From assembly GCF_003918875.1 (NCBI RefSeq), contig NW_025766558.1, positions 3,596,001 to 3,660,000 on the forward strand: a stretch of DNA of 64,000 nucleotides. The letters are read 5' to 3'. This DNA comes from Haliotis rubra (taxonomy: Eukaryota). Below the pieces are notes generated by a model that worked only from the letters and a program-made list of their open reading frames with translations, made no database searches and was not told the origin of the DNA. Below, piece after piece: positions 19,836 to 63,741 of the stretch. Both the position numbers and the translations under genes were made by a program. The first letter of the stretch is position 1; every line of letters starts with the position of its first letter.

Positions 19836-20948
19836 TTCCTCCAAATAGATCAGAAGATCTTCAAAACATCATGCTTATGTAATAATATAATTATACCCAA
19901 CACACACACACACGCACGCACGCGCGCACACACACATAGTATATGGGAACAAAATGTACAGGCTATTAACAGCCAGGTATTGGTAAGATTATTACCACAT
20001 ATGCTATTGAGGATATCTTTTGGTTTATACAAACACTGAGAATTCTATAATAGTAACATACCATGTTATTTCATCAATATCATTGTTATCGGCCCAAGAA
20101 AGAATGACTCACCCACTCCATCATCTCTATTTTGACATATATTTCAACATCAAGATTATCGAGTAGAGTTTGTGTCACCATCTCCAACGTAGGACATACC
20201 ATTTCCTTCGTAGGAGTTATTTAGTCCTACGTAGGACTACTTTCTCCTACGTAGAACTTAATATTTCCTACGTAGGACTTAATATTTCCTAAGTTGTATC
20301 TAATATATCCTTTTTAAGTTTCGGATTATGAAGTTTGGTTATTAAGTTGAGAAATGTTTGGCTATGCAGGACGTCAGATAACAGAAATGCAAGTCAGTGA
20401 ATATTCATGACACTAACGCAGTGTTACTATACAGTGTTAATGTGTGTGTGTGTGTGTGTGTGTTACGTTAGGGTGACGTGGACCTTGTTCTAATTGCAGT
20501 TAAGGAGGTTTTGGTATTGTTATGCTAGAGGTGCTCCTCAAGTTGTTGCTTGTCTTCAGATATGGCTAGGTGGATCGGATACAACGCTCGTGTGCGGTTT
20601 GTTTTTTCGTGATCGTTTACAGGTTGACTTGACTGGGGTGGAAAAGTGTTAAGTGCGGCGAGAAACAATACGAAATTGAAAAAAGGCAAAGAATTGTCAT
20701 TATAGTTATTTGTATAAGTATAATGGAATTAGTACGCATAAATTGCCACCGATAGTCTAAAGCCACCCTGACACTTGCACGAATTTTGTCCCCGAACTGT
20801 CGCGCAATACGTCGTGGCAATGCGTGTAATTTAGATGGTACGCATGAAAGCGCGAAGCCTAGTTTGCGCACTGTTCGCGTCCTGTTTACGCATAAGTAAC
20901 GCAATTGGCACGCAATGCGCGACAGAAAATGGTGCACATTGTCAGGCA

Positions 20949-20981
<33 letters not shown>

Positions 20982-22484: not shown

Positions 22485-22519
<35 letters not shown>

Positions 22520-38739: not shown

Positions 38740-41023
38740 CTACAGAAGCTTCATCATCCACTCCATCTCCCAGTCGAATATTTTCTGTCGAGCCTCATTC
38801 CTGTGTTGACTCCTTGCAAGGCTTCTCTTCCTCCGGGAGTGACTCAGCTGGTGAAATGTGAAGGGTGATATTGCGAATCTGCTGTGATCGGAACACGTGT
38901 CACCTGCCCACACGTCCAGGTTGCGCTGCACGTCAGCCTTTATCAGATCAATGTCAAGGTCATCATAGACATGGAACTCGACTCCAGATACGTTCTTGCT
39001 GTAGACCATGAGAACCTTCGAAAGAAATAACATTGAGAAATCGTCCAATTAACCGTGCAGTATGTGAGACACTTCACTATGCGTGGTTACAGGGAGTATT
39101 TTGATATTTAATCTCCTTTCTGGCACATCCTGGAACAACCGAGGTTTAATTGGCAACAGGGCATGACAGTTACTTTGCATAACATTTTACAAACAGCTAA
39201 TATCATATACGTCTTTTGGAACTACATTTGATAAATATATCAGTTGATGATGACACTAGTTTTCTTTGAAGACTGTTGTTCCTAATGAGAAGTCTTGACG
39301 CCAAATAATACAAAAACGCCTACTATAAAAACCTTCAGGCATGAAACCTTCAGCTCAAATTATATTTATCTGTACGTGGACGCACATAATTCGGTCATGA
39401 CCAATAATTGTTACTAGTTTCAGCGTTCTTGTAGTGAATATTAGAATTACAAAATGCATACCATATATTTCTTTGTGCGAACTTTGCCATCTGTTAATTT
39501 GTGATAAATGTGTTTTATAATGCTGCCTAATCGGGATTACCTTCAGAATTCCTTTCAAGCTCTTAATATCTTCCTGGTGATCTACGAAGATTCGAACCCT
39601 GCCCGCGGCCCTGTAGGCCATCTCCTGCTCAACCAGTTCCATCAATGGCATCGGATTCTTCTCGGAGCTGAACATCAAGACCTCAATACTGCCTGAAGGC
39701 TCTGTTGGATAACGTGACGTCATCAACGGCACTGGAACCAAGTGATATCACAAGTTGGCTAATGATGTATAAATCTTTGAAGCAATAAAGTTCCCACGGA
39801 GAACAAATTTAAGGCATAAATCATTGAATTATATTTTTAGACGTGGGTTCATTTAAGGAAATTGTTTCCAAATGAAACAAAAAGAAATTTGTTCATCCCA
39901 ACACAATGCGGTATTACGTATGGTGATGTTATTTTTCATCACAATAGGGACGGCTTCCACTTCAAGGCCTTACTACAGGTACTATGCTAAAGGTTTTACA
40001 GTAGGCATGAGAAAGACGTCTTCCGTTTATTATGTTGGGTGAACAATAGATTTGCCTTTGCGTCCTTTTGTATTTTGGTAGAATACCTGGTGCCATCACT
40101 GTCTGGTACTGAATCAGAAACATATGCTCACCAAATGGTTGGAATAAAAAATCGAGATTTCTATAATTATTGACTGTGTTCTAGCATACATAAACAGAAA
40201 TTTGGTAAAATGATATCTCACTTAGCAAAGAGTACAGCTGAATGTTTTCAACACAGATGTTGCCATCATGACAGGCGAGGGAGTGGACGCTGGACTCTGC
40301 CGTCTCGGTATCAAAGAAGGTCGCCCGGTCTGTCAGATCAGGGAACGCTCTGGTTGCTCGGTTGATGAACTTGTCCACAACCACAGAACACGCTTTCACT
40401 TTGTCATCCCACAGATGACCTGGAAAGCACGCGTGTGGCAAATATTTAGTTTATCAGAACAAACTACCCAAGGAGTTTTTAGAAACAAGACAAGTTTTTT
40501 CAAGCCTGTAAATGTGAAAACAACCACAAAGCTAAATGTTATTGAGTTGACGAGAAACAAATAACATGCTAAGTTGTAAGAAATATATGTTAGTAAAGAA
40601 AATATAACTTCATCACATTACGATTTCTGCAGCTGCAATGCAAGAAAACTACTACTTTTATTTTATCTCAACCCATTCTCTCGATCATGGTAACTGAGGT
40701 ATCACGTATACGAAATCATTCGTATTGAATAAAACCACAGTATCTCCTGTACTTTTGTGGTTTGTACCTTTTGTTGTAAAACATACAACATGTTACCTGT
40801 CGCCGGACATCCTCCGCACAATTCAACAATACATTTCTGTATGTCCGGATTGAGGTCCACTCTGGGCAGACGACCAAATCCAGCAGCTGAAGTCATCCGC
40901 TCCTGCAACGTTCTAGCCTCCTCCTTGCGGAATGGTAAGGTTTGTTTGCAGAATGCTGGCTGCTCAGTCGTGGAACATAGCCTGAAGAAACATTCAAACG
41001 GCATTTAACACTCTGAAGCCGAC
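38740..41023 (-). CDS. Hedge-domain gene C-terminal four exons (41023-40797, 40419-40222, 39731-39541, 39015-38740)
   Basis: FCKQTLPFR..CIVELCGGCPAT | GHLWDDKVKAC..CVENIQLYSLL | MPLM..NPMPLMELVEQE..LK | VLMVYSKNV..WAGDTC..RRKRS..DWEMEWMMKLL*. Phases 1-1-0 match. Confidence 0.85.
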
Positions 41024-44000
41024 CTTTAACATATAAACAAACACTAGATATGCATTTAATCTCAGCACACTTACTCGTTATACAGTTGTCTCAGAAGCAT
41101 TATTTTTCAAGAGGTCGAATCTCGGATAGACTTTGATGCTTTCACACTGAGCTGATACAACTAACAATTAACAACAAAATGTAAAGACCTCCTTTCCAAA
41201 CTGTTGCTAGAATTTTGAATCCAAAGGCGAATTTGTATTACATGAACAGTATTTCTAATATGATATGATCAATAGCTCTTGAGATAATTCTTGAGTCTTA
41301 CATACCCATTTTGATGAAACTGGAAGGTAAGGTATTGTTTCACTCTACCTAGAGGATGAATGTCACAGATCCCTTTGTCAAAAGGATGAATAACAGGACC
41401 ACCTTAAAAATGGTTTGAAAATATTAATTATACAACATCAAATGATATCATTATAATATTCGGAAATATAAAACGTCAGTGTAAAAACACCCAGTGTTGA
41501 CCATCCATAAAATCCATTTAATTTGTGGTAAAAGGGCAAAATGGCTTTGAAAATTATAAGAATGGACGACTAAACATCAGTAATGACACCGTGTGTTCGC
41601 CAAGAGGGGACACACGCCCTGCCCTAAGTTCACTTTTAGACCTGTTGTTGGTGTAAATTTGTAACGTGGTACCATGACAGAATCATCATATCTCACAGTA
41701 GTTATATCTTTATCTCACCCTGAAGTAACTCCTCTTGTATGTCCAATATCTGTCTGAAGTAGGTAGTGTTCCAAGTGTTCCACAGCGTGATGTAGTTCAG
41801 TTCATTCCCATGTTGAAGAGGCCTGATATCCACATACAATTCATCTTGGTGACACCCTACACCCAAACCCCTCATCTGCTGTCTTAGAAAGGGCGTACAG
41901 CATCTGAACAACGTCTTAGCCAAATACACGAATTCGGAATTATGTCGATATCGAGGTGGCCTCAACTCAACGGCCTGTCCTGTTTGGAATCTATACATTT
42001 CCTCCACATGCCTAATGTCAAAATTCACCATGTTTACGGACTGCGTACGGTACCCAGAGCCTTTACAATTTCTACTTTATCGCCATATTCCTCGGAAATT
42101 AGATCAAGACACATGAGCAGTGATGAGTCAACCCTCAAATAATGTCTATTTGGACAGCTCATATCTTGGATGGTGTAATATTCGGAGAGATAGGTGTCTT
42201 TATCAAAGCCGGGAAACAGGTTTGGCAATATTGCTTCATGTTCTAGAGATTCAGGGTACATGTATTCTGTTTGTTCATTTGGAGGAGGGCCAACAGCAAG
42301 CCTAGCAATGTCGTCATGAGAAAACTCTACCCGTATTCCAATGAAATCTTCCTGACTCTTGACAAACACTTCGATAAATTGGGGGCTTGAAAAATTCATG
42401 AAATCAAAACCAGAGCATGCAGCCAAAACTGCCAATCTATTTAAACTTGAAATCGGCGAACTTGTGAGACACAGCCCTCTGAAAATATGTTACATATCAC
42501 TGTTTAATGACAGAGTCATCGCAAATATGTTTACATTTTAAAAATTTATCAATGTACTAATTGTTGGTGTATTTTGGTCAGAAGTTGCAAGCTCAGAGGC
42601 GTGTAACCATTTTGGTCCAGCTTGGTGAAAACTGGTCTCATATGACATCTGAGGTCATGCGTGATTTTCATGTTTCTGTTTAGGAAGTTTTCCTAACTAT
42701 TCACATAAATGTAGAAATAATACTTTACGAACCCTGTAAACTACCTATTATTTCAACATCATATTGGGTACCACACCTTCCTAGTTTTCAAATAAAATGG
42801 CTCACGATCTCTACTGTCAACCGATATGCTGAAATAGATGAATGGTTATGGTCTTTGGTGAACACGTGAGATCTCGCTCGTGATGTTCCTGCAAATTGTA
42901 TACTTCTGAGAAGTTAAACACATTCCTGGAAAACAAATAATTAGTACCTTCCTTCTCTGTAGTGCAGTGGCATGTCTGATTGCTCGGTAAAGGCCCTTTC
43001 AACGTTCACGTCTGCAATGAAATGTACACACAGGTCTTAGACAGCATTATTCAATTGATGGTTTGCGGGTTGTGGGTTGCTACAACCGACCAGATGACCT
43101 TCGATGTGTTTATTGTTTTACCCGCTTTGTTTCCATTTTTACTATGTTAAACATCATTATCTCCTTTTTGATAACCAAATGTGCTCCAACAAAACCTTTA
43201 ATATGCTTCTGTAGATATTACTATGTACCTTGCTGCAATCCATTATGTCCATTTTGTATATCATTGACAATGGTTGATAAACAAAAAATTATATCACAAA
43301 ACTTACAACTTAAACGTTAACAATTGATTACATTTCTAAAACGTGAAAAAGCATATATCTATTGCCTACAAGATGTTCATTTCACTGAAAATATGGAAAA
43401 GACAATACAGGAAGAATGGGGAAGTAAGAACTGCTTTTTCAGTTTTTTTAAGAGTAATTCTCGTGCGGTAGCAATCCTATGCTCTAAATGGCTTGACTTC
43501 GAGCTTCAGGGGGTAACCACAGATGAAGAAGGTAATGTGATAATAACTGAAATGACACTCGACTGATATAAACTTACTATTGGTAACCTCTATGGTCCAA
43601 ACAATGACGATGCAGACTTTATATATCTCTTGCGCAGAAAATCAAAAACTTCCATAGTGACCATGTGATCTTATGTGGACATTGGAATGTTGTACAAGAA
43701 TTCTCTACTGACACCTTTAATTATAAACATAAGAATAACCCTAAAGCTAGAGACCAGATTTTACAACTAAAAAAGATCTAGATTTCTTTGATCCCTGGCG
43801 TCAAATGAACCCTATGACCGGCGATAAACCTGACGACAACCCACTCCACTTACACAAGCGCGCTTAGATTACTTTCTCGTATTTCATAATATGCTACCCT
43901 CATTTACAGAATCAGTAATAGAACAAGGTTTCAAAACAGACCACTCCTTGATATCGGTGACATTCAAACTTTCAGATTTATCACGCGGCAAAGGGTTTTG

Positions 44001-47000
44001 GAAGTTTAATAATTCTCTATTTAGAGACCACATCTATGTCAAGAAAGTGAAGAATGTTATTTCTGAAACCGTTGCTCAGTATAATGTAGACACAGATAGA
44101 TATAGCATTGACGACCAAATTCTTTTCGAAACTATTTTATTGATGATCAGAGGAGAAACCATTAAGTACTCTTCATTCCAGAAAAAGGAAAGAATTAAAA
44201 AGGAAAAACATCTCTCTGACAATCTAAATGAAAAAGAAATTCAACTTGATGAATCAGATAATGAAACCGTTAAAAAGGAAATAATAACTGAAATATAGGC
44301 TATTCAACAGGAACTTGAAGAAATATATGTAACTAGAACCCAATGTTCAATTCTTAGATCCAAAGCAAAATTTGGCGTCCAATATCACTATTATCAGTAT
44401 TCTATAAAGTTGCTTCAATGGCAATTTCAAAACGAATTAAATCCGTTTTGGACACATTGATAAACGAGGACCATAAAGGCTTTATGTCTGGTAGATGAAT
44501 AAATGATATCACCAGGCAGATCTATGACTTGATTGAATATACTGACACATACCAAATCCCCGGACTTCTATTATTAATAGATTTTGAAAAGGCCTTCGAT
44601 ATTGTTGATTGGTCATTTATTGATAAAACTTGTATCTTTTTTAATTTTGGAGAATCAATTAAAAATTGGATTAAGGTTTTCTAAAATAATATTAAATCAA
44701 GTGTACTTGTAAATGGTTTTGGCTCAAATAGCTTTGAAATATACAGGGGCTGTCGTCAAGGTGATGCGCTATCACCATATATTTTTTATACTTTGTGTTG
44801 AAATTCTCGCAATAATGATACGTAATAATGTAGAAGTGAAAGGAATTCATGTAGAATATCTTCTAAATCAGTTCGCTGATGATACTACCTGCTCCCTAGA
44901 TGGATCAGAACGCGTTTTACAAGCAGTGCTTCAAATCTTAACTTTCTTTGCCCGCTTTTAAGGATTGAAAGGGAACATAGACAAAACTAGAATTATTTGG
45001 ATTGGTTGAGAGAAACGTTCAAGAATGAAACTTTGTCGGAAATGGAATCTAAACTGGGAACAAAGTAATTTTGAACTACTGGGAATAAAATTAGACATGG
45101 ATATTAAAGATATGATTGATTTGAACTACAACAAGCTAATAGAATGTGAAACCCTCATATCAATATGGTCAACTCGAACCCTAACCCCTTTGGGCAGAAC
45201 CACTGTGTTGAAATCTCTTATCCTCCCAAAATGAAACCATTTGTTTGCGTCTCTGCCAAATCCTCCGGACAAATTGATTGAGGGATTTCGAGGTAGATGT
45301 TTTCGATTTATATGGGGAAACGAGCCCGATAAAGTCAAACGTGACCAACTGATATGCACTGTTAAAGATGGTGGTCTAAATGCACCTAATATAAAAGAAA
45401 TAATGCAAGCTCAAAAGATTTCTGTCTTAAGACGATTTTATAATAACCACACCAAATGGTTTAATTATTTTTCTGAAAATCTACCTAAACTGGGGTCTGC
45501 AACTATTTTTGAATATAATTGTGCAAATCTAAGAAAAGTTATCATTCCACTTGTTCGCAACAACTTCTACTGTGATCTTCTGAATGCCTGGTGGGATTTA
45601 CTATCTAGACATGGGGCAGCAGATTCACCAAATATCACCTCTCAATATATCTGGTATAATCAAAACATCTTAATCGATAGGAAATCTATATTCTATCGAA
45701 ACTGGAATGCAAAAGGTGTAATATTTATAGATGATCTTCTGAATGACTCTGGAAAATTCATGTCTCTTGATATCTTTGAAAATAAATACAACGTTAAAAT
45801 GTTTCTAGAATATTCAGTATATTAACTCACTCAAAGCATTCCTCAAAAGAAGTAATATCAACTTAGAAACCATCAGGAAAACACAAAACCCTTTGCAACC
45901 ATATATGTTAAACTTTTTGATTAGACAAAAACAATGAAGGCAAATATACAGGGCTTTACTTGACACGTTTAATGTCTGGACGTTATATTGGAAGCTTTAC
46001 TAGAAACAAAATCAATAAAAAATCAACATGTGTAAAATGGAAAAGGATACTAGAGAATGAAATCGATGGAAACTATTGGCAACAATATACCCATATCCCG
46101 TTCCGCTGTAGTTCCAATACAAACTCCTGCACCATCTTTTACCAACAATTATAGCTAAAACACATGGAATTAGCATGAAACGGCCCTCCCATTATCAGAA
46201 ATATGCGGGCCGCTGCAAATGATATTGGACCGCTCAACCTTAACGACGGGCCACTATCAGTTCTGTTGTCAAGTGACGTCATAGTGGGTGCGTCGGTTCA
46301 TTCGACTTTGGCTTTGGACTGGCAGATATTCTGGGGCAAACAAGACAAAGCAATCCGAATTCCCGCTTTAAATAGCGGTATTATTGGCTTTCTTGCTGGT
46401 GCTAACCTTAACAATTGCACTATTAACGTTGTTGTTGTTGGACCAAAACCGAACACTGACAACTGACGTGTCTGACATAGTTTGACATGCTGCAAGCCAT
46501 GGTCTTGTCAAAGGCCAAGGTCGAATATCGTCACGTTCTGTTGTGACGTCACTTGAATTGTTCGATGACGTAATTGCATTCGGGCAGTCAACCCCGTCAG
46601 AAGTTGGTTTTGAGTAAACTTACAGTCAAATTCCTTCATTGTTTCCTTTTTCTTTTCAACACAAATCCCATGTATTTTAGCAAAAATAACGGTAATGCTA
46701 TTTTTGAGGGCATTATCATTTGCAGAAGCCCTCGGTCTTTTTAAACTTCGTCGGGCAGTTAATGGAAGACCTCGGGCTTCTGCAAATGATAATGCCCTAA
46801 AACATAGCATTACCGTTATTATTGCTAAAATACATGGGATTTGTGTTGAAAAGAAAAAGGAAACAATTAAGGAATTTGACTGTAGGCCAGAAGAACAATG
46901 ATCCAATCAACGTGTTTCTTATCCTTTTCAAAAATATTATCTTTAACTGTAAAATATCTAAACAGATGCCAACCTTTCAGTTTTTACAACAGGAGCTTAA

Positions 47001-50000
47001 AAAATATTATGAACTAACAAAATATTCTGCTACGACATATTGCAAATTTTAAACAGAACAAAAAACCCGACTGGAAACAAACACTAAGAAATGTGTGATC
47101 AACAGATGCAAGGTGATTGTCAAATGTATAGGTCTACAGTGATTTATCGACCTTCTTGACAACCGTCAAAATCAAGAATGAGACCCCATGCACGTGTATG
47201 GGACTACTGCGTTGTGCATGTACTTCCCATCCGTTGTGTTTAGCGGTGGTTATCAAGAAGAAATGTGGTGAGTTCATAAGATGTCTGTGTTTGAAAGGTC
47301 AACGCTTACACTTCCTATCCAAATTTAAAGTTCAGGTTCCCCTATTTGCAAAGAGTCTTACTATCTCTCATAACATATATCATATTCTTAATGTTAATTC
47401 TCAAGTTATATGTACATTCACACTGATATAATGTTGAAAATGGAAACCAATATATATATATATATATATATATAACTGTACCTATGCCGTCTGCATGTGC
47501 TAGTTTAGCGAGTTGTCGTAGTTTGAGCGCCATCCTGGGAGTCATTAGCCGAGTGCTACAGTATGACCAGGGTTCTGTTTGGCTCATGGAGGGCAGACAT
47601 GGCGTTCTACATCTTCTGGTGGAGAATCCACACACACTGCTGGGACTCCCCTCAGGCCTGAACACAACATCACTCCTATCGTAGTGATACAGCCTAGAAC
47701 AGAACATCTGAATTATTAGTGTACAGAATAAACATGTTCTCTTGTATACAGTTTAACATGGGGTAGTCAGAAGCTCTGCAGTGTTGTATTTTCATACTTT
47801 TGCATATCTTCCGAGTTCAACCTGCTCAGAGCACCTTGAGGAGGCCCACATGCTTCATCCACGCCTTCTCCGGATGGTATGGTATCGCCTACATTCAGAA
47901 TAGGGGCCTCTTTCGCACACCTTTGGAATCGAGCGTCATTACCTGTACATAAAAAACAAACATTACAAAATTCAAATATTTGCACTGGTGTGTCTCATAA
48001 TGTGTGGACTCATTATTTTATGAGGATATACGTTACTTTGTAACAACGTTGTTAATATCATATGGTAGAAATAACAAAATTCAATCAGAAATGTTTTAGT
48101 TTTGGGCTGTAAGATTGCTAAAACGTGAACTCCAGAGAATAATGGTCTCTAATGTTTGCAGAAACAGCTTTCAGAGAACAAACGACAAAAAGTGTGAGGA
48201 AAATATTTTGAACGGATCAAAACAAATCAGTGAAGACGTGTATCAACCTTTACCTTCATCAGCAATCAGGTCTTCAAACATCGCTCTCTCAGTACTCATG
48301 TTCATCACCCCGTCCTTCTTCATCGCAACGTGGATAACAGCGAACTCTCTGTTGATGCCGACATAGTCGAATCCAGAACAGACGCACAGGGAACCTATTC
48401 TGTCAAAGGTCGTGTTGTCAACCGTGTTGGCGGCTAAAGGAGGATACAGCAATGTTATTCACACATTACACATGGTTTGTTAGTGAGTAAACATAACACA
48501 AATATCATTGCATTCCTGAAACCAAACCTATATACAAATGTAATCATGAAGCAAAATAGATATGCAGTACCGTTAGCATGTACTGTTTCTTAGGAAACAC
48601 ATGTGAAAATATTATTCGTATACATGTACTTTGAAATGGAAACTCACACTTACACGTTTGGCAAGACACATTTAACATGACCATGAAGACGTCTACCATT
48701 TGACTCTGAAATCTGAAAATATCCTTTCATTTTCATTTCACTGGATAACTGAGCTCACTCACAGAAACAAATGCCACAGAGCGTGCTACATTGTTGGGTC
48801 CCGAAAATGTACACCTCACTCACTTGCTCAGGATCACAGAATCGCAGGAGACAACATTCAGAATATTAAAGTGATGTGTTTGGTGCCCAAACAACAACAT
48901 GGCAATGTCCGTTATAGCTGTTACGAAAACATACCTGAAACTCCTGTCACCGTTACAACAGCAGCTCTGCCTTCATAGTGTAGGGAACTGTTACCATGGT
49001 GACCACCAGGAAAGGCTGGGCTTGGTTCATCCCAGGCAGCTAGTACTATGAGTGTTGCTATGGGAGATACAGTCGAGTTATATTACACCGAATCTAGTCC
49101 CAACTAACCTGATCTCTGTCACATAGTTTTCTAATGTTGCTATTAAAAATTCCTAGTGTTTCTACTGAAAAGAGCGGGATTGCTAACGTATTAGAAATAA
49201 CAAAAACCCACCTGCTTATATTTTCCAAACAATGTTAGAGTAATTTATTGAAATTACTATTAGTTACTTTTAAAGTAATTTAAGGTGTTTGTGGAGTTAA
49301 TACGATTTCCTTCAATATACATTTAACGGGTTATGAGAAACGCCACATACAAACCGTTTGTCCACTCTGTTTTGACCAACTGACTCAGTTTAGTGATTGC
49401 ACGGGCAAGACGAGGTGTCATACATCTACTGGCACAGATGGTTGTTGAATGGTTGTTACATACTGAACATGCTGATGGCGTCAGTTCACAAAGAGCACTT
49501 TCCTCAGCAGCAAACACAATGTCCGTTCCTTCCAAAACCTCGAACCTACAACAGAATGAACAATCCTTAAACAGAAATAACAGAAATGTTTGTCCTTATG
49601 TTGCCGATGTTATGATCTCGAGTCATTCAAGATACGTTCATATATGACGCATATCATAGTGTACGGTGAAGAAAAACAACCTTCAAATGACTCTTTCTCT
49701 CAATCGATCACATTGAAGGAAAGTATCCTTCGAATATGTCAACTTACTTGTTGAACAGACTGCTGCCCCGTACAACCCTGTCAGTCATTTCGCCACACAC
49801 CTGGTCCTGTGTGAGTGGAGGCCCAAGTTCTGCAGGGCCGTCACAATGGGCCAAACATGTCAGGGACAGGCTGGACTCTGTGAGTGTCTCTCTTTTCGTG
49901 ATCTTCGGATTTAACATAACATCCCTGAAACAAGTACCTTTACTTTGACATACTCGTAATGCAAGCTCATGTAACATCATAACACTGTGTCTCAAAGTGT

Positions 50001-53000
50001 CATTTTCGAAATAACTTGGACATTGTGCTCATTGTATCATCCTGTGCAATATGACGTTCGTATGCAAGCAAAGTTTAGTTCTCACCATACGTTGCATCCA
50101 AATGCTTCAACGGACAGAACTGACTTTTCAACAGAAAATAATCCATCTACTGCAAGTGTCGCTTCTGTGCATACTTCAAGTCCACTAATGACAGATTCCA
50201 TTTTCATGCTTGGCCGTACTCTGTAAATCCAAAGTCAATAATATATTAACTGTCTTAACGTAAGGTACATATTGCATTGTACATATATTGCTAGGCGACT
50301 TGACTACTGTCAAAATATTCAGTGGTTGGTAGTCTTCATTTAGAACACGCGTATATGTACGGCATTACTTTTTCTTACTCATCTGTAAAACACATTTTTA
50401 TGTTATTTCATAACTTATTTTCTGACTACTTGGTAGATAAATGTCATTAGATTCTGTACTCTGCAAAGGTCTATATACACTGAACGAACAAACATCACTA
50501 CACGCTATAGATATGTACGTTATTTCCATTGGTGGGTACAGGTTGATGGTTATGTCCTTTACTTTCCAGGAAACAGATGCGTTGAAGAAAATCTGAAAAA
50601 AATGACAGCAAGTTGTTTAGATACTTGCCTATTTGCGGTCTCAGTTATCACTGTTATCATTATATGTGTACGGTAATACATCTACTATTGGTATACCTTC
50701 ACATTTGACTTATGTACCTGTTATTGAAGTTCGCCTTCCACGGGACACAAAAGTGAATCTTTTCACGTAATCCCCACAATAGTTTAGAGACATTGCATCA
50801 CGTTAACCTGATACACAACATAGCCAGTGACCGTCCAAGGCAAATGGAACATGAATGCTCAAATGGTACATACATGCTAAAACAAATCAACGAATGCATT
50901 CAACTACTACCTTCTGGAACACATCGACGGTGACGTTGAATGTGTCAGGAACAGCCATCTCTACTGTGTCCTGTCCATCCGATGTCCAGGCGTGAGATGT
51001 GATGTCTCCTTGTAGCGATGATGATGCCTCAAACTGCTGCGCTGCAACGGGTTAAGCATTGAAATTATGACTACAGGCTGTGTGGTGTCGATATAGATCT
51101 TGAAGGTTGAAGCAAATGTTCCAACTGTACACCATGCTACCATACAAACATACAGCATAATCAAAAATAAAGTTGATAATTGATTTACGACAGACTTAGT
51201 GTACGGTTCCATGTCAGACTATACTCTCTAAATAAAGAAACGCATAGGCGTTTTCAGCAGTTCATTTCGATATATTTTGATTTGGATCAAACGTCATTAA
51301 GACAATTCCTAATTTTGAATCCCGTTAATCATGTCGTGGTTGTTACGTATTGCGCGCAAACCCATCCCAAAATGTGTTTGTAAATGTTTGTCATAAAAAA
51401 TGAAAACGATACAGAAAAAATTGTCCACTCAATGGACGTGCAATGAGTCAGAAACATGACACATCGATTATAATAAGTCAAACCAAATTCATCATTTCAT
51501 TACGAAATTCACGACGTAAACGAAGATAAAAAATACCAAGATTGAATTCTACTGACCAAAATATCGCCATTGGACGTTTGGAAGCAGGGGACTCACAGTC
51601 TGCCGTTGCAAGACACTTCAAAGTTCACCTGAGGGCAATTATCTCGATTATGGCATCGGTATAGCCGCTTCAACTTGACCCAAGATCGTCCCAGAAGTGG
51701 AAGACCAAGAGTGACCACTCCTGCTCAAGACCGATTCATCCGGGTGTTACACCAACGTCACCGATTTGCTACAGCAACGGACACTGCAGGACAGGTGCCT
51801 GATCTGCGAAGAATTTCCGTTCAAACCATCAGAAATCGTCTGAGAGAAGTGACGATTCGGGCATATCGAACAAAAGTTGGACATGTCCTTGACACGACAA
51901 CAACGACGTGTCCAATAGTGGTCCAGCGATGAATCGCGTTTCCTCCTGCAACGACGGGAAGGGAGACAACGTGTCTATCGACGTCGACACGAACCATTTG
52001 CGCCGGACTGCGTTCGACAGGTGGACAGATTTGTTGGACGGAGCGTCGTGGTGTGGGGAAACATGTCCTACACGGGCAGATCAGAGCTAGTGGTGGTTAA
52101 AGGCAATCTTGCAGCAAATCGCAAGGTAAGTCACAAAACATAAATTAAAACCTTCTTGTTTTAATCGTAGAATATGTGTATTTTTATTGTATGGCTAGAT
52201 ATATCTAAATTGCTGACAGCAGAAGACATGATGTAAATCCAGCTTGGGCCAATGCAGGAAGCAAATGTACTGTAAGTCCCCATGGTCCCTAGTATGGTGA
52301 TCTACCTATAGTTGTTGGCAATCTATAGCCCGATTTTACCTTTCTTGTCATTTATAGGTAAAATATTTTAGATTTAATTACTAGTCTTAAATTTATTCCT
52401 GTGATAATCTAGTTGTTTTACAGCCCTTATTGTTCATGTAAAACATTTCTCGTCACTATATGACTGAAATATTGCCGAGGTGACGTTAAATCTTAACTCA
52501 CTCTCTCTACCAAATCCTGCGACCTCACCTTCCCCCACTTTTTAACCGCAAGAGGTCGCTGTTTCAACACGGCTACGCTCGACCTCACACAGCTCGTGTA
52601 ACAGGTGCCTATCTCGCTAATTCCAACGTCAATGTCCTTCCCTGGCCATTCAAATCATCTGATCTGAACCCGATCTAGCATCTATGGGACAAACTTGATC
52701 GACGCGTCCGTAAAGCTCACCATCGTCTTCAGATACATGCAGAACTTGCCTACGCGTTGCAAGATCAATCGTAAAAAATCCCCGAGGAAAATATCCGACG
52801 ACTTGTGCAATCCATTCGAAGGCGGTGTCGAGCAGTAACGGCTGCAAGGGGTCACCTGGTGCTAATGTGAACGCCTCCTTGTGTCCACACATGTGCAGTG
52901 AGTGAAGTGAATTAATGCTGACAATGACAACAGTTCATATGTTCATCCGTGTGTTGAATTTCTTTCATTTATGTTCAAGCTTTAAACACGAGTTATAAAC

Positions 53001-56000: not shown

Positions 56001-59000
56001 GCCTAAAATACAATGAACTTCTTCTTCTAAGAATGCTAACATACTTATGTGTTAATTATATCAATACTCCTTCTCACCTGTGATATGTATTTCACCAGTT
56101 TCGGCTTGTTGTTTACCTTCTTTATGAGTAGTTCACTGTAATAATAAAGTATAACGATCTTGGTGATAACTTCTTTATCCTAATAAGCAGTTTCACGGAC
56201 TGCTAGGGGGATCTCTGACAGCGAGTTGAGTCCACCAGCTTCAACGATGCACCGACCGTTGATTTGAATACCAAATTCGTCACGATTGGAATCCGTGGCC
56301 ATCAGATGAGCACATGTGCTTGCTGTATTCACCAATATTGAAACATTCACAGCATGATATCAATATATGTATAAGACCTTCGTCTGATATCCAACCTGGA
56401 CCAAAATATCATGAGCAGCCTCGGCCTCCAACCGAATGGGATCACAGCTATAAAATCATTATGGATATTGTCTGTGTATATGGCAAAAAATGAAACGAGG
56501 GGGCAGTTGAATATTTTTCATCTTTAAGAGTGGGCTATGTCAACGAATAGTGTTCTCATTAATATAAAGCACAAAGCGCAAAGGAGAAATCACAAACGGA
56601 ATAAACCCATTCAGTTCCTTCCGTCCGTCATTCAGACTGGTTGCCCAACATTAAAGGTTTGCAGCTGTTCACACTTGTAAGGCCTCAAATAACAAGAACT
56701 TTAATGTAACCATCACTACATAACACGTTTGATCTTAGGATCCAATTCTGCTCCATACCATGCTACTGCAACCAAATTAATGTTCGCCTCACTCAAAAAG
56801 GTTGTCAGGTCAACACTCGATTACTTATGTAGTCGTTGTATTTTTTAGTTTGACCTTAAAAAAACAAATGAAACGGGCTGCTCTCTTGCTGGTTTGAACT
56901 CATGGGTATGTCATATATCAACACTAATACAATATACATCAACATACTCACAACACATATGACATGTCTGTTCCTCCATGACAATCCATGCACCTCACAA
57001 TGAAGTCATCCTTCAGCATAAGAAGGTCTTCTTGCGACGGAGAAAATGTCACATTTGCCTGTCTCGCACCTGAGGTCTTGTGGACTGCAAAGTATTTGTC
57101 TGGGGCACTGCTTTGATTATGATGTTCATTGAAGGGTATTCTGGTTGAGAAATTGGCGTGCCAGTCGAGATTCCCGAGTATTTTGGTGAGGATGTTCGAC
57201 AGATAACGGCGATGACGCTGCTTGGTTTCAACGGGCAGATCCGATCGTCCAGGGCTGTAGCGGAAGTGAATGTTGGCCTCCTCTATCATGTCATAAGGCC
57301 TTGAAATGACAAAAATACCCATTAGGTTTAGTAATGATTAGTTATGCTAAAAGAACAATGTTGAACAAAGTGTGTATGTTAAGAGTGTGTGTGTGTGTGT
57401 GTGGATTAATCTGGTGCTGAGAAATATATGGTTCGGTTACACATATGGACATTGTCACACTACTGGCGGGTGTCTTTACACGTTGGACAGCGTGAAATTG
57501 GAGTTGCCTACGTGGTGGGTTCGAACTCAACAACATACCCCTGCCTATGTTTTGGAAAACTACAAAACTGCAAAGTAAGGTTTAACCCAACTCGGACATC
57601 TGCTTACACACGCTCGCATGTATTCATGATGTCGGCAATCCTATAACATTCCCTCTGGCTATAAAACATATAACGTATTCCACTTTCTCCTATTGGTATT
57701 GATGTAAATCAAGAAGCTGTTGGACAGTTAAGCGATTAAATCAGTCAAGAGCGCATAGTCCGAAATCAAATAGTGCTCCAATATGTGCACTTAAATCATT
57801 TCGTCTAAATGGATAGCGCTATAAGGTGCTGATGCAGGCGTTACTATCAACTGATACAATACGAAACATCAACGTCAAAGAAAAACACGAGAATGTTTTA
57901 CAAACTCTTAAAGAAATGAAAAATGGGTCAATAGACATAATGACATTTCACTTTTTTGGTCCTGTATATATTTACTCAAATGATTTCGTTTTCGTGAGAG
58001 AAAAAAGAAACATTACATTAAGCAATGACATACATCACCAAGTACAAAATAATAGGGTGTCGCTACGGTTTCACAGTTTGCTGACACCTGAAATGGGCTT
58101 CACTTCACACATTGTAACCATGTGGGGAATTGAATCCTTGTCTTCAGCGTGACGAGCGGACCATTAGGCTAACCACCGCCGAACCCCACCCCCACCCTCC
58201 TTATGTAAAGAGTGGCGTGGGATAAGCTGATAAGCTGAGCTGTCGAGCTGGAATCAGGACACGATAACAAGTGCGCTGCAGTCATGACATTCCGGATGTG
58301 TACGTTTGCTGGTGCAACCGGATCGGATCGTATTACGTATTTTGCTTATCACCCACTCCAATCAGGGCCGATCAGAGCAACATATGTAACATATTCATAA
58401 CATTTGCTCCAAACTAAATTTTAATTAAGTGAACTAAGCCAACGACAAGTATTATCAAGTATGCACTATGGCAAACTTTCACGTAAACACTTGTGTCATT
58501 CCCAATCGACACGACGATCAGTACTTGGTCTACAGGGGCTGTAAGTTCAGTATCAAGAGTGAGTGAGTTAATATTTAACGTCACATCGGCAATATTTCGG
58601 CCATATCGTGACGAGAAAATGTTTGATATTGAAATGGAATATGTGTATTCTATATAACCCTGTCGTCAAAGGACAGTAAAACCACTAGAATATCACAATT
58701 ACAATTAAATCTAGTGTGGAAAGTTAAAACTAATAGCACTATTTGGACAATACAATATAAAAAAACAGGCTACAGATTGTCAACAACTGAAGGTAGATCA
58801 CAACACTAGGGACTCGGTATCAAGACCAGACGAAGGACTGTTTTTTCCAACCCGACATTAAGGCCATTGGCTTTTTAAAGAAGGAACAAGGCTGGGTGGA
58901 GGCATGTGTTCTTCTGATAAGAAACGGTGCCAAACCTCCACGTAGGAAGAGAAGATGAGTTGCACGTAACCATGCCTTGGAAATGTACAAGAGACTCATT

Positions 59001-60561
59001 ATCACATTTAACTGGTAATTAAGTGTGAATGGTGTGATGTGAAATATTGATGTATAATATGTAACATGATGTTGATGTTGTATTAAGTTGTATAAATGGA
59101 TATGTATATATATAATCAATAAATACAGACAAACATTGAATCAAACGTAGTAGCATTTTATCCCATTTGGCCCCGGATACTATTTCACAGGGAGCCAAAT
59201 AAGGGATTAAAGAGGATTATCATATCCCAGTGATTTCTTCTATTGAAACAATAGGAGTTGGGTAAGTGGGAAGACCCCGTCCTTGCAGCAAGTCTACAGG
59301 AACAAAGCACGAGGCTACGGGGCCAGGCTGTGATACCATCATGTTGATCGGTTTATTCCCTGGAAGACCAGGGACGTTTAAAACAACAAACCGGTGGAGC
59401 ATGCAAGGATTTTCAAGTCGACTGCCTCCAGAGAAAAATAGAGTTTTTGTTCTCATTTACGACTGGCAAGATGATACGTTTATTTGCAGTTTATAATATT
59501 TTTATCACATCATCACACAAACATGTGTATTTTATACACTTGTTCGTTCATTTATAATAAATTAATCGATCACAGTAAAGAAATTTACAAGCACTTTTCA
59601 CACATAACATTAAATTTTGAACAATTTCCATACATTACATACATTTATTTTAAAACAGATATATTTCATATATTTGTTTTCAGCACTTTTCATGCATTTC
59701 AATTCATCAATTACATTTCATACATTTCTTAAACATGTAACCTTGATGCACTAATATTCTTTCTCCACGGCGGGACGGAAAGAACTTATGGTTCATGGTT
59801 TAGTAAATGTATCATTCCTTAAAAAAGTTCACTACTTTCCAAAGTAAATTCAATAATTGGTGAACATGTTTTTTTTAACTAAAGTTGTGAGCTCAAACTC
59901 AATGTATTCAGTAAGTGGTATGCTTAATTCACTGACATTTTGAGACGACCCCATACTGTCAAAACAATGGTTATTGGCGTTAATTACTTCAAAGGACACC
60001 GGCAAGTCGGCCTGGTGCACCTCTCTGCATGCCCACTTGTCTAAAGACCTCGCAGGACGCCCCATAAGCACATGGGTAAATAAATATAGTAATCCAACGG
60101 ACCATTATTTACACCCCATAAAATACATGAAAATACAGTTTTCATAAGTAACATGTGTTACATTTGAAATTACTTTTTTTTAGTAAAGTACAAATTCTAA
60201 TTCTTTTGTTGGGTTGAGTCCCATCCGGGATTCGAACCAACACCCTCAGAGTCAGGGCAGCTAATCGCCAACACACAAAGTCAGCCGCCTAACTCGCTTA
60301 GCCACCGCGGCTTCTACAAAAAGGTTAACATATGTTACATTTGACCACTTTCTAAATAGCATTGTGTATTCATAGCTTCCGGCTTCGGGAGCCGTGTCAA
60401 TTTACACTATCAGAGGGGTACACCAAGTTCGTAGTCTAGACTACCAGCTGTCCGACTTCCATATTTGTGAAAGCCGAGGTGGATGAGGGTTCGATACCCC
60501 TCTATTGAAAATGACTATAGACCATGTTGAAGTTAATATTATGCATTGGCGGATTCAAGTG

Positions 60562-60592
<31 letters not shown>

Positions 60593-63500
60593 AAGGGGTT
60601 CGAAGCCCCCTTTTGAAAATGATTAAGGCCCATATTGAAGTTAATGTTATGCATTTGCGGATCGGGGGTGGGGTGGGTGGGTGGGTGGTTGGTTGTGGGA
60701 TTCAGGGGGTTCGAAACCCCCTTTGAAAATTCCTGGATCCGCCTATGGACGTGGATTAATTTCAGCCGTCTCTCATTCCCACGGTGGTATGTTTTCTAAA
60801 TAAAATTATCTGGGAGCAAATGCAGACTGACAAAAAGTTGGGATGTTTAGATAAACATGTCGAAACTGTTCATAAGAAGTAAAACATGTGTTGACGACAA
60901 ACAGTCTTTGCAAGAACGTTCATGTTGAGAAAAACAGAAAACCAAAGCACATCGCATGGTTTTCCCCACGCAGTAGCGTCACAAACGTTCACTGATCTTG
61001 TGGGATTAATGTTCCGCGCCAACTATCTGCGAATCCCAGCTGCAAGATGGTCAGTCCCTGCTCTCTCGACCGTGACGGACCCGGACACCCGGCTACCGTC
61101 CACCTTGGTAGGATTTCTTCAGCCAAAACAATGGGCATTAAGAAGGGTGGATGCCATCATATGCCGTTATTTGAAAATATTCCCTGTAGTTGTTGTCCAA
61201 TTGTAATAAAGTATAACAGCAGTGTAGACTTTTACGGGTTTTCTAATACGTGGTTGGTATAATGACTGATCAAATTTGATCCTTGGGGATTTATTACCTC
61301 GATATTTAATCGTATCCTGTAAAAATGTGATGTTTGTTACGTATGGTATTAAAAAACACATAATTTGAATCCTTACACAAAACAACCCCATTTTGCCATT
61401 GCAAATACAATTCTGAAAATAACTAAGATAAATAAGTATATACAGATTTTAAGTTCCGTTCGTATCATCAAAACAGTGTGGACACCTACGTTTATTGGGC
61501 AGTTCGAATTGCATGCAATACAGCGATTACTACTCCCTTGCTGTAACCCGTGTTTGGTGGTATAAACTTACACCTGTTTATTTGTCATCATTCACTTGAT
61601 GGTCAGTTAATGAATCTACAGGTACAAATGTAACAGTGCGACATTGATCTTGAACAATTCCACGTCTACTCGTTGTTTTTACCCCGCGACTACAAGGATG
61701 ATATCCAATAATTCCTGACTGGGTTGCGATCTCTGCAGTGCCACCCGCAAGCGCATTTGGTAGTATAAGTGCGTATTCTTACATTGATCAACAAAGATGA
61801 AGTACAGTTTCGTACTGAATTAATTGGAAAATGTTACCTTTTTTAACATTAATATTTCTATCTTCATTATCATTATAATAAATGTTTAATTTCATCTGCC
61901 AGTGGTAAAAAATGTTAGAATTGAAATTGTCGGTTATCCTGTGAAGGTTAATACTTTGTTTTTACACAGGCAGATCAAGAAAGCGTATGCCATGGTTAAC
62001 CGAAATAAATTACTTTATCTTCTTTTAAGAAATTGTATCCTGCTTGTTTGCCAATCCGGTTCCACTATTGGAAATATATATGTTTAAAGCAAATTCTATC
62101 CATTGCTTTGATTGTTCCACTGGTGTTAGACAAGGATGTCCACATAGTCCTTTGTTCTCCATATTTATGAAAGTGTGGAACATTAATTAATTCATTAATT
62201 AGGGGTGACAGCATGGCCCAAGAAATTAGTGTGCTATTTTTATCTGCTTTTTTGGAGGTCTGGGTTTTGGGGGGTCTGCGTTATGGGAGTGAACCTTTGC
62301 AAAAAAATGTGGGTGTATTCAATATACGTTAGTAAACATATACATACATAAACACTACCTTTTGACAAAACCGCATGATAAAAGTAATTTAACAATCAAC
62401 TCGTTATAGGTTAATCCTTTGATCGATGTATATTTCTTTAACTCAGCTGAAAATTCCTCTTGCTGCATTTCCACGCGCATATTACCAGGGATAATCTACA
62501 GATATTACAACTTTCCATAAATATTCCTGTCTGACTGACTGACTGACTGAGTTTGGTTTTACGCCGCTTTTAGCAATATTCAAGCAATATCACGGCGGGG
62601 GACACCAGAAATTGGCTTTACTCATTGTACCCATGTGGGGATTCGAACCCAGGTCTTCGGCGTGACGAGCCAACGCTTTAACCACTAGACTACCCCACCG
62701 CCCCTCCTGTCTGAAGACCATAGATAAAACTCATCAATATCACGATAGTGTGTACACTCACCCAGCAGGGACAACGTGTATGGAAATACGATATTCAGTA
62801 GGAAAGTAGATGCTGGAGATCTTAGCATAGATTCCATCTCCACCAGATCCCTGTGACGCATTACACCTCCATGTTGTGCTCCCCAGGATGAGCTGACCCA
62901 CTCTCCAGTCCCTGCCCACATCATTCTGGGTGGTCACCATCAGGATCTTGTCATCCACACACACGAGGCGCTGGAAAATATATGTCCTCTCGTGATCGCT
63001 TTTGTTACCATTTAATGACAATGAAAAGGATGAAATGTCGAGTTTCTGCCAATGTTTACTGCTTTAATTCAAAATCAACAAATTAAATGAATCCTGATAA
63101 ATATTTAATCCTTGTAGGGTGGCCATTATCGTTTCCCCAAATAACAGCATATTATCAGGGATATATACTATATCACAAAAAAAATAACAGCAATGTCAGG
63201 CTTGAAAAGAAAATATTCCTAACGTATGAGAAAATCACTATGCAATATGGAATTGAAATGTCAGTATTGTCTCGGTACCCATTGGCCTCAAGACATGCCA
63301 GCCAACGTCAGATTTCGTCATACGTGTCTATGTACCCGTGAACATCCGGGTTAGAATTGTTTTGTCAGCAACCCATGCTTGTAAAAGGCGACTATACAGA
63401 TCGGGTGGTCATGGAATTTTCACCTTTTTACAATTGAAATTATATGAAATAATAGCTCTTAAAGTAACGGAATACATTCTTCTAAAATGCCTTATGCGTT

Positions 63501-63741
63501 TCTATTTTTGAAGAGTGTATATAAACAAAGTCACTTGAAACCGTTCATAACCACATACCTTTAGTCCATCAATGACATCAAGATCAACAACATCACTGAG
63601 GACACCAGAACTGTGAAGTTTGAACCGTTCCCCGTTGTCGTCAGTTGTGAAGTCCACGTTGTGGTGGAAGGAGTTGTCGGTAGAATGACTGTCGTGTGGG
63701 AACAGCCCCGATATAACAAAGAAGAAAACCAGACGCAACAT
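38740..63741 (-). CDS. Multi-exon gene for a secreted protein of about 1500 aa with two Hedgehog-N (Hedge)-like domains and a peptidase M15-like domain; disrupted as assembled
   Basis: Exons (5' to 3'): 63741-63559, 62970-62762, 57299-56952, 56447-56078, 55730-55475, 51124-50911, 50592-50519, 50220-50086, 49924-49748, 49545-49355, 49057-48935, 48433-48254, 47942-47798, 47693-47482, 43011-42948, 42478-41719, [unresolved], 41023-40797, 40419-40222, 39731-39541, 39015-38740. All are GT-AG. Phases match once two 1-nt deletions are allowed, except at the 41719/41023 junction. Confidence 0.85.
41719..42250 (-). CDS. Peptidase M15 (Zn-DD-carboxypeptidase)-like domain, rest of exon 16
   Basis: LSEYYTIQDMSC..LRVDSSLLMCLDLI...VEIVK-GSGYRTQSVN..RFQTGQAVEL..LAK..GLGVGC..LYVDIRP follows the M15 pattern (SGYR..N, HxxGxAxD, GxG, HVDxR). 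Needs +1 nt at about 42061. Confidence 0.75.
42350..47942 (-). CDS. Hedge-like domain 2 (exons 13-15 and start of exon 16)
   Basis: LNVGDTIP..EACGPPQGALSRLNS, DVVFRPE, STRLMTPRMALKLRQLAKL, VNVERAF..PLHYREGRGLCLT, LNRLAVLAACSGFDFM..IEVFVKSQ. Confidence 0.88.
43265..47060 (+). mobile_element. L1/Tx1-clade LINE ORF2 (EN+RT), decayed, intronic and antisense to the host gene
   Basis: YCLQDVHF, GNLYGPN, DYFL, TDHS, GFWKFNNSL, IDFEKAFD, GCRQGDALSP, QFADDTT, GGLNAP, IWYNQNI, FQYKLLH. Confidence 0.93.
46172..46884. mobile_element. Insertion with a 119-bp-arm foldback, Crypton-like non-autonomous element
   Basis: Arms 46621-46739 and 46766-46884. The upstream ORF ends GANLNNCTINV. It replaces the zinc-finger region of the LINE. 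Confidence 0.5.
48254..49924 (-). CDS. Hedge-like domain 1 (exons 9-12)
   Basis: VCGEMTDRVVRGSSLFNK, DIVFAAEE, ASRCMTPRLARAITKLSQLVKTEW, LIVLAAWDE...[31 protein letters not shown]...IHVAMKK. Colinear with Shh [79 protein letters not shown]. Confidence 0.92.
50086..51124 (-). CDS. Hedge-domain gene exons 6-8 (51124-50911, 50592-50519, 50220-50086)
   Basis: GTFASTFKIYIDTTQP..(1-nt frameshift)..VPDTFNVTVDVFQK | IFFNASVSWKVKDITINLYPPMEI | VRPSMKMESVISGLEVC...FGCNV. Phases 1-0-2-2. Confidence 0.7.
51222..53061 (+). mobile_element. Near full-length decayed Tc1 element with a nested LINE 3' UTR (about 52123-52507)
   Basis: TIRs tactctctaaataaagaaacgcatagg and cctatgcgtttctttttttgaagagt. Motifs DRPRSGRPRVTTPAQDRFI, SDESRF, WPFKSSDLNP. 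Confidence 0.88.
53975..55357 (+). mobile_element. 1383-bp element with about 200-250-bp imperfect TIRs, AGTA..TACT ends and 5(6)-bp TSD; miniature Polinton/Maverick-like
   Basis: TSD gcgtt at 53970-53974 and 55358-55362. TIR core cccgacaaattccgctggtggaagtgcactccaattag...gtcccttcggaaagcgaagagg is mirrored at about 55150-55300. Decayed internal ORF about 54288-55083. An empty-site equivalent is visible at about 37141-37160. Confidence 0.75.
55475..55730 (-). CDS. Hedge-domain gene exon 5
   Basis: ccttcag|LEGESQLRADIEVEF...GFRASGRYTI|gtgggt, phase 0 to 1. Confidence 0.8.
56078..56447 (-). CDS. Hedge-domain gene exon 4 (two in-frame stops)
   Basis: CDPIRLEAEAAHDILVQVGYQTKVLYIY*YHAVN...ETAY*DKEV...VKYISQ|gtgaga. 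Phase 2 to 0 fits both neighbours. Confidence 0.55.
56952..57299 (-). CDS. Hedge-domain gene exon 3 (contains RHRR)
   Basis: tttcaag|PYDMIEEANIHF...CMDCHGGTDMSYV|gtgagt, phase 2 to 2. Confidence 0.8.
58558..58820 (-). mobile_element. I/Nimb LINE 3' end
   Basis: Reverse complement of the 3719-3887-type tail and UTR. Confidence 0.8.
60205..60316 (-). mobile_element. tRNA-like SINE head or pseudo-tRNA
   Basis: A box ggtggctaagcgagtta and B box ggttcgaatccc with an over-long spacer and no clean acceptor stem. Confidence 0.5.
60475..60747. repeat. Three units (about 115 bp) of a gcggatc..ggatccgcc MITE-end-derived tandem repeat
   Basis: ggggttcga.accccc..ttgaaaat recurs at about 60487, 60595 and 60706. 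Ends cctggatccgcctatg. Confidence 0.65.
62535..62704 (-). mobile_element. Short tRNA-derived SINE
   Basis: ggcggtggggtagtctagtggttaaagcg..ggttcgaatccc head and gatattgcttgaatattgctaaaagcggcgtaaaaccaaac(tcag)n tail. Confidence 0.85.
62762..62970 (-). CDS. Hedge-domain gene exon 2
   Basis: ttttccag|RLVCVDDKIL...IHVVPA(G)|gtgagt, phase 0 to 2. Confidence 0.8.
63559..63741 (-). CDS. Hedge-domain gene exon 1 (signal peptide)
   Basis: MLRLVFFFVISGLFPHDSHS...DLDVIDGLK|gtatgt, phase 0. Confidence 0.75.

Follow-up and report, generated by a model that had tools for sequence, protein, structure and literature searches.

A Hint-less abalone protein predicted to combine two Hedge domains with M15A-like and CD38-like modules

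Hedgehog proteins (Hh, Shh, Ihh, and Dhh) are secreted and carry a Hedge domain (Pfam HH_signal, the Hh-N fold) at their mature N-terminus, where a Cys is palmitoylated, and they end in a Hint/Hog autoprocessing domain with a GCF cleavage site. In Hedgling, a protein of sponges, cnidarians, and choanoflagellates (for example Nematostella Nv 200640; PMC2362128), a single N-terminal Hedge without Hint is followed by vWA, cadherin, and EGF repeats. Published surveys (Bürglin 2008, PMC2362128; De Oliveira 2016, PMC5103448; an annelid survey, PMC9695228; Roelink 2018, PMC6027127) describe only Hh, Hedgling, relatives with a Hog domain (Lophohog and the nematode Hh-related proteins among them), and Hh-like peptidases of bacteria, and it is debated whether Hedge came by vertical descent through Hedgling or by transfer from bacteria (PMC6027127). 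Here, we describe LOC124279450, a gene of the blacklip abalone Haliotis rubra that lies in a 64,000-nucleotide stretch of genomic DNA (referred to below as the window) and whose product carries Hedge domains in an arrangement unlike either of these.

Our reading is that LOC124279450 encodes a secreted glycoprotein of ~1,397 amino acids in which an N-terminal all-beta domain is followed by two Hedge domains, an M15A-like module, and a CD38-like domain, and that this protein is processed by furin-like convertases and uses its peptidase-fold modules for binding rather than cutting. We place the probability of this reading at roughly 0.7. The abalone protein resembles Hedgehog in being secreted and in sharing the Hedge domain. 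However, it lacks the Hint/Hog domain and the GCF site, its Hedge modules are internal (starting at residues 524 and 737, behind a 500-residue domain), their zinc triads are incomplete, a four-cysteine insert occupies the calcium loop, and four further domains are present that are not found in Hh. Hint-less Hedge in a large extracellular protein is shared with Hedgling, whose DD-peptidase motif is also incomplete (PMC6027127), but the abalone protein has two internal Hedge modules joined to M15A-like and CD38-like domains where Hedgling has one at its N-terminus. No family member had a Pfam match to Hint/Hog, and the residues past the Hedge modules fold as the M15A-like and CD38-like domains; Pfam matches to vWA, cadherin, and EGF were likewise absent from the abalone family proteins, and, the signal peptide aside, the protein has no membrane span. 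A preliminary description of this DNA, made from its letters, had proposed a Hint-less secreted protein with three modules of the Hedgehog/DD-peptidase fold in a row, a third architecture distinct from Hedgehog and Hedgling, and this proposal holds up. No description of the family was found in a full-text literature search, which left most subscription journals outside its coverage.

Gene structure of LOC124279450

The span of LOC124279450, annotated in RefSeq as an "uncharacterized protein" of H. rubra (contig QXJH01000025.1, assembly GCA_003918875.1), coincides letter for letter with positions 38740-63741 of the window. The gene is on the minus strand, with its ATG at 63741 and its stop at 38742-38740, and the RefSeq start and stop are identical to ours. 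Homologous proteins of ~1,400 amino acids map colinearly onto the window by tblastn, from ~63.7 kb to 38.7 kb. When junctions were chosen by reading frame, GT/GC-AG ends, and best fit to a close relative, the gene resolved into 21 exons, with GT-AG at every junction and good consensus. The GT-AG boundaries proposed previously are correct, while the count of 20 exons is not. The exons are as follows.

63741-63559, minus strand: exon 1, ATG and signal peptide; the N-terminus is the same in P0039 and P0047
62970-62762, minus strand: exon 2, N-terminal all-beta domain
57299-56952, minus strand: exon 3, N-terminal all-beta domain
56135-56078, minus strand: exon 4, N-terminal all-beta domain
55730-55475, minus strand: exon 5, N-terminal all-beta domain
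51041-50911, minus strand: exon 6, N-terminal all-beta domain
50592-50519, minus strand: exon 7, N-terminal all-beta domain
50220-50086, minus strand: exon 8, N-terminal all-beta domain
49924-49748, minus strand: exon 9, N-terminal all-beta domain
49545-49355, minus strand: exon 10, Hedge 1
49057-48935, minus strand: exon 11, Hedge 1, with SLHYEGRA at 48986-48963
48433-48254, minus strand: exon 12, Hedge 1
47942-47798, minus strand: exon 13, linker from Hedge 1 to Hedge 2
47693-47482, minus strand: exon 14, Hedge 2
43011-42948, minus strand: exon 15, Hedge 2, with LHYREGR
42478-41719, minus strand: exon 16, a single exon of 760 nucleotides holding the end of Hedge 2 (42478 to ~42325), a linker, and module 3
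41402-41306, minus strand: exon 17, end of module 3 and C-terminal region
40981-40797, minus strand: exon 18, C-terminal region
40419-40222, minus strand: exon 19, C-terminal region
39731-39541, minus strand: exon 20, C-terminal region
39015-38740, minus strand: exon 21, C-terminal region, including the stop

The spliced product of 1,397 residues aligns end to end and without gaps with P0048 of H. asinina (1,397 residues, 89.7% identity) and with P0049 of H. rufescens (1,391 residues, 86.6% identity). Over residues 1-831, our model and P0047, the RefSeq product of LOC124279450 (isoform X1), are 99.9% identical. P0047 departs from the model only at exon 16, where exon 15 is joined to an internal acceptor (…LHYREGR|PLQHG…) and a break in the reading frame is skipped. 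The gene is therefore real, already annotated, and uncharacterized. It is not the hidden gene that the preliminary description took it for, since RefSeq gives the same start and stop and UniRef relatives bear the name "Hedgehog N-terminal signalling domain-containing protein." The multi-exon gene on the minus strand is as that description had it; the single uninterrupted frame is not, owing to the break in exon 16, which the proposed exon set had overlooked.

Domains of the predicted protein

The proposed module order (signal peptide, beta region, Hedge 1, Hedge 2, M15-like domain, C-terminus) was recovered, with a beta region of ~500 residues (24-523) in place of the ~600 estimated at first. 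The main features of the protein, in order, are as follows.

63741-63682, minus strand: signal peptide, residues 1 to ~20, hydrophobic N-terminus MLRLVFFFVISGLF
57206-57217, minus strand: furin-like site RHRR, residues 159-162, conserved in the family with the consensus RxRR
48254-49545, minus strand: Hedge 1, residues 524-690, exons 10-12
42325-47693, minus strand: Hedge 2, residues 737-880, exons 14 and 15 and the first third of exon 16
42192-41719 and on into exon 17, minus strand: module 3, residues ~925-1085, exon 16
42061-42064, minus strand: frame break, one base fewer than in the H. rubra paralogue L001
40959-38803, minus strand: C-terminal domain, residues 1123-1377 (~255 residues), exons 17-21 region
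38835-38824, minus strand: furin-like site RRKR, residues 1367-1370, conserved in the family
within 38743-38835, minus strand: conserved C-terminal helix with the motif NWE..WL.K, after RRKR (model residues 853-873)

Both Hedge domains are recognizable by sequence. The 53-residue open segment of exon 11, which had been singled out as the key exon and whose coordinates proved exact, passes the Pfam HH_signal threshold by itself (22.7 bits, E = 8.7e-5). The same profile matches the RefSeq product P0047 at E = 2.4e-19 and the H. asinina orthologue P0048 at E = 6.4e-21, in the latter over two stretches, as also in other family members. Profiles of the family match ShhN chains in the PDB at E = 1.1e-15 for Hedge 1 and 7.2e-19 for Hedge 2. 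Aligned with each other by hhalign (E = 2.9e-37), Hedge 1 and Hedge 2 are clear duplicates. Hedge 2 superposes on Hh-N over nearly the whole domain with a root mean square deviation of 1.4 Å. Sequence identity to Hh-N is 25-29%.

The sites through which Hh meets metal ions are altered in both domains. The Shh-type zinc site (H141, D148, and H183) and the catalytic-type E177 are not conserved at the corresponding positions of Hedge 1 and Hedge 2 across the family: H141 is variable, other residues take the place of D148, and H183, which lacks conservation in Hedge 1, is Glu in Hedge 2. In the window itself, Hedge 1 keeps two of the three zinc ligands, with Val in place of Shh D148, and Hedge 2 has Arg in place of D148 and Glu in place of H183. 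Both domains also contain an insert with four cysteines between the motifs DV.F.PEG and R.MTPR, which in the alignment with Shh falls in DEENTGADRLMT. The insert occupies the calcium loop.

These alterations bear on whether the protein could act as an extracellular ligand or decoy of the Hedgehog pathway, with its Hedge modules binding Patched, Ihog/CDO/BOC, or HHIP-type partners and so modulating Hh signaling. The close superposition of Hedge 2 on Hh-N and the identity given above speak for such a role. HHIP, however, contacts the zinc of Hh, and calcium is part of the Hh contact with CDO/BOC, whereas the abalone modules have incomplete zinc triads, and their insert of four cysteines occupies a loop that takes part in calcium binding in Hh. 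Because of these two features, the canonical Hh-receptor contacts are disfavored. In addition, the internal position of the Hedge modules leaves no N-terminal Cys for palmitate, and without Hint there is no cholesterol. We regard a role as Hedgehog ligand or decoy as the least probable of the readings considered here.

Module 3 has the Hedgehog/DD-peptidase fold in its AlphaFold model. By Foldseek, it matches predicted M15A and DUF882 proteins (E = 4.5e-7 to 2.8e-4), in line with the M15-like module proposed at the outset, and it reaches a template modeling (TM) score of 0.72 against a Peptidase_M15_3 cluster of the Atlas. Among described proteins, the nearest are the M15A zinc D-Ala-D-Ala carboxypeptidase of Streptomyces albus (PDB code 1lbu) and the Peptidase_M15_3/DUF882 (MepK-type) proteins; the abalone module differs from them in lying inside an animal multidomain protein and in lacking a Pfam match. 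Alignment of module 3 with Hedge 1 by hhalign gave a probability of 2%. Across the family, the motif SxYRxxSxN…RFQxGQAVE…LYxDxRP is similar to that of M15A, and by motif position against the M15A consensus, Gln, Glu, and Tyr presumably replace the zinc ligands His, Asp, and His. PDB sequence matches to module 3, obtained with the single exon and with the family profile, were rejected as spurious, as they led to designed "Cake" repeat proteins through one stretch of 16 residues.

A complete His-Asp-His zinc triad thus appears to be present in none of the three peptidase-fold modules, the ligand places of module 3 being taken from the M15A consensus. For this reason, the modules most likely bind rather than cut.

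The C-terminal region, which the preliminary description had left as ~300 unassigned residues, was modeled with the two-subdomain fold of CD38/ADP-ribosyl cyclase. Some 200 of its residues align, over nearly the whole ectodomain (Foldseek E of ~1e-4), and it contains ten conserved cysteines; the ADP-ribosyl cyclase family also has ten. Compared with CD38, BST-1/CD157, and the Aplysia cyclase (PF02267), which are likewise extracellular, the abalone domain does not stand alone but is fused behind the Hedge and M15 modules, has no sequence-level match to them, and possibly lacks the catalytic residues. Members of that family are marked by a catalytic Glu (E226 in CD38) and a TLEDTL-type signature; a rough mapping by eye, which serves as a lead only, puts an invariant Lys at the position expected for this Glu. 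The domain is also the most constrained part of the protein, with a ratio of nonsynonymous to synonymous substitution rates (dN/dS) of 0.13 in comparison with the H. rubra paralogue, to which all ratios below refer. Feature searches of the ESM Atlas (scores of 0.4 to 0.6; 0.40 for CD38-type proteins) were kept as leads only.

The N-terminal domain (residues 24-523, exons 1-9) was modeled by AlphaFold2 from P0047 residues 1-523, with a predicted local distance difference test score (pLDDT) of 78.5 and a predicted TM score of 0.72. It is all-beta, with hairpins of 20 to 25 residues. The model matched no solved structure. It did match a predicted protein of Lingula (E = 1.3e-22) and also predicted fungal DUF7029 and DUF7223 proteins, as well as secreted Myxococcota proteins, the last at TM scores of 0.54 to 0.60. 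The RHRR site lies in a disordered loop of this domain (residues 152-180, pLDDT below 50). The product as a whole contains 39 Cys and 15 N-glycosylation sequons. From the signal peptide and the furin-like sites, we infer that the protein is secreted and furin-processed.

Collectively, these observations suggest a protein that would be exported and then cut by furin-like convertases, with three peptidase-fold modules that would act as binding modules and not as enzymes, and with a CD38-like domain that could serve for nucleotide binding or provide an enzymatic output, or could likewise be a non-catalytic fold. Several points weigh against this reading. The assignments of module 3 and of the C-terminal and N-terminal domains depend on AlphaFold models from shallow alignments (15 to 17 sequences), and the large model was built from the H. 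asinina orthologue and not from the product of the window. Searches of Pfam at E values up to 10 returned no match to PF08291 (the Peptidase_M15_3 profile that had been expected to fit) or PF05951 for module 3, none to PF02267 (Rib_hydrolayse) for the C-terminal domain, and no credible match for the N-terminal domain. By sequence, the N-terminal domain matched no PDB chain, and the C-terminal profile found 0 matches among PDB sequences. The hhalign comparison of module 3 with Hedge 2 is weak (probability 24%) and no more than suggestive, its alignment falling on the homologous core. That the modules bind is, moreover, inferred. Finally, all three RefSeq models of this subfamily in H. rubra (P0047, P0039, and P0050) lack most of exon 16; this skipping could be real alternative splicing, or the annotation pipeline could have introduced it.

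The frame break in exon 16

Within exon 16, the frame shifts at ~42062-42063, where a base is missing from GTAAAGGC relative to the H. rubra paralogue L001. The upstream frame runs to …GDKVEIV and the next frame resumes at GSGYRTQSVN…, and homologous proteins align straight through with no residues lost. The residue at this position is Lys in both H. asinina and H. rufescens. Read straight on, the upstream frame meets a stop nine codons past the break (TAA at 42036-42034). In L001, which is the P0039 locus, exon 16 (L001:47960-48720) is open over all 253 codons; P0039 and P0047 use different acceptors inside exon 16, although at the P0039 locus the exon is intact. A short intron was considered as the cause of the break and rejected, since VEIV and GSGYR, the residues on its two sides, are contiguous in the alignment with every homologue. 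We marked the break as X in the working model and left it unmended.

Either the assembly is wrong at this point or the mutation is very young. If it is real, this copy would be a recently inactivated pseudogene whose protein ends nine codons past the break, leaving the function with a close paralogue. The deletion is present in the public assembly, the RefSeq model had to splice around it, and two close H. rubra copies exist (LOC124262764 and LOC124268503; 85-93% identity), so one copy would be dispensable. Against this, the break is the single defect in a coding sequence of 4.2 kb that has no other stop or frame defect. Upstream of the break the dN/dS ratio is 0.18; downstream, where the frame stays fully open, it is as low (0.16), so this part evolved as coding sequence until very recently. 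The site also lies where a short A run meets a G run, a typical spot for indel errors, and three similar paralogues might confuse polishing. An assembly error is therefore more likely than true inactivation, and we consider a pseudogene doubtful, if better placed than the other alternatives weighed in this paper.

Family, surroundings, and possible role

An exhaustive HMMER search with the largest open segment (minus-strand positions 42037-42477 of the window) as query returned 35 protein clusters, several of them of ~1,400 residues. The taxon range given here draws on word-indexed homologue searches that gave few matches, and it is a lower bound. Members occur in gastropods (H. rubra, H. asinina, H. 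rufescens, Batillaria, and Gigantopelta), with a further Haliotis paralogue of 1,404 residues at 32% identity, in bivalves (Sinanodonta, Potamilus, Mercenaria, Saccostrea, Ostrea, Pecten, Ylistrum, and Pinctada), in cephalopods (Octopus and Argonauta), and in sea stars (Asterias rubens and A. amurensis). Full-length proteins are present in the three molluscan classes, and a shorter one in sea stars. All of these members are labeled "uncharacterized" or "hypothetical," and three uncharacterized AlphaFold DB entries that match the large model (A0A2T7NW12, A0A8B6GDD1, and V4B8A6) are apparent members as well. Copy number has expanded in Haliotis and Saccostrea. Short metagenome and Logan relatives were set aside, as they are exon-sized open reading frames (ORFs) without taxonomy.

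In the Asterias protein (940 residues), a signal peptide is present but the N-terminal beta domain is not, and Pfam detects a single Hedge (residues 311-407). At the place of Hedge 1, residues 77-221 of Asterias P0033 have no four-cysteine insert and carry an RSGYQ motif like that of module 3; this segment looks more M15A-like than Hedge-like. Two further proteins, P0076 (ENA, 1950 residues) and P0075 (NCBI, 440 residues), which we take to be bacterial from their domain content, give strong full-length HH_signal matches (E = 1e-51). Their Hedge lies behind an AvrRpt2-type cysteine protease domain in P0076 and behind a VanY domain in P0075, so both are examples of Hedge at the C-terminal end of larger proteins.

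The dN/dS ratio of LOC124279450 is 0.20 overall. By part, it is 0.20 for the N-terminal domain, 0.28 for Hedge 1, 0.34 for the linker and the start of Hedge 2, and 0.17 for exon 16. Judged by its sequences, the family is conserved and under purifying selection.

Several other elements were noted in and beside the window. In the 4.5-kb intron between exons 14 and 15, on the opposite strand, 43324-45825 (plus strand) holds ORFs that by eye resemble the endonuclease/reverse transcriptase of a non-long-terminal-repeat retrotransposon. The intron between exons 5 and 6 contains ORF fragments that, also by eye, resemble remnants of a Tc1/mariner-type transposase (51542-52143, plus strand; helix-turn-helix, RPRSGRPRVTT…). 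At 12119-16041 (plus strand), retroelement-like ORFs lie on the same strand as one another, and by eye they comprise a serine-rich protein followed by reverse-transcriptase-like and RNase H-like parts. An ORF of 135 residues at 19048-19455 (minus strand), which may form part of a gene for a small secreted protein as one of its exons, combines an EGF-like pattern of cysteines with a signal-like start and a motif of the thrombospondin type 1 repeat kind (W..W..CS.SCGGG). Two identical ORFs of 110 residues (20617-20949 and 22157-22489, minus strand) lie 1,540 nucleotides apart, suggesting that a tandem duplication occurred recently or that they belong to a repeat element. Just past window position 64000 (L002:1-2743) is a divergently transcribed neighbor gene for a vitellogenin-type large lipid transfer protein (PF01347).

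The composition of the protein invites comparison with bacterial polymorphic toxins. Animal ADP-ribosyl cyclase and HINT have been traced to such toxins (Zhang et al. 2012; Aravind et al. 2012), which we cite as context and not as evidence for the abalone protein. By analogy only, teneurins are also large animal extracellular proteins; their C-terminal domain is proposed to derive from a bacterial polymorphic toxin and to have been kept in non-catalytic form (PMC3482391, PMC3417536), but the abalone protein lacks YD/RHS repeats and a membrane span. An innate-immunity effector of this build would recognize cell-wall peptides with its dead peptidase modules, make contact with surfaces or membranes through its beta domain, and act as an NAD(P)-consuming or signal-making enzyme through the CD38-like domain. 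Consistent with this idea, the ancestors of M15-fold modules are enzymes binding D-Ala-D-Ala stem peptides, the N-terminal fold is common to secreted bacterial and fungal proteins, and the family has undergone the copy-number expansions mentioned above. However, families of toxins, PGRPs, and NADases showed no link to it at the level of sequence, CD38's catalytic Glu seems not to be conserved (by the rough mapping, a lead only), and dN/dS values of 0.13 to 0.34 give no sign of an arms race. An immune sensor-effector is possible but unsupported, and we think it unlikely.

Less likely again, though above a Hedgehog-pathway role, is that our preferred reading of a secreted protein with binding modules extends to an old bilaterian secreted family in which modules for recognition, originating from cell-wall peptidases (two Hedge and one M15A-like), are joined to a CD38-type NAD(P) nucleotide domain. 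If so, the protein could act outside the cell as a sensor-effector, making or consuming messengers of the cyclic ADP-ribose (cADPR) or NAADP type upon ligand binding; alternatively, a toxin-like bacterial ancestor has been proposed for both animal Hh-N and CD38, and the protein could be a relative of it that has survived.

Hedge is otherwise known in two settings only, Hedgehog and Hedgling; the abalone-type protein is a third conserved architecture, present in protostomes and deuterostomes. Hedge beside a more bacterial-looking M15A module offers new material for the debate on the origin of Hedge and for a phylogeny of the modules, and the fusion with a CD38-fold domain joins two folds of animal signaling, each with an origin traced to bacterial proteins (PMC3482391, PMC6027127).

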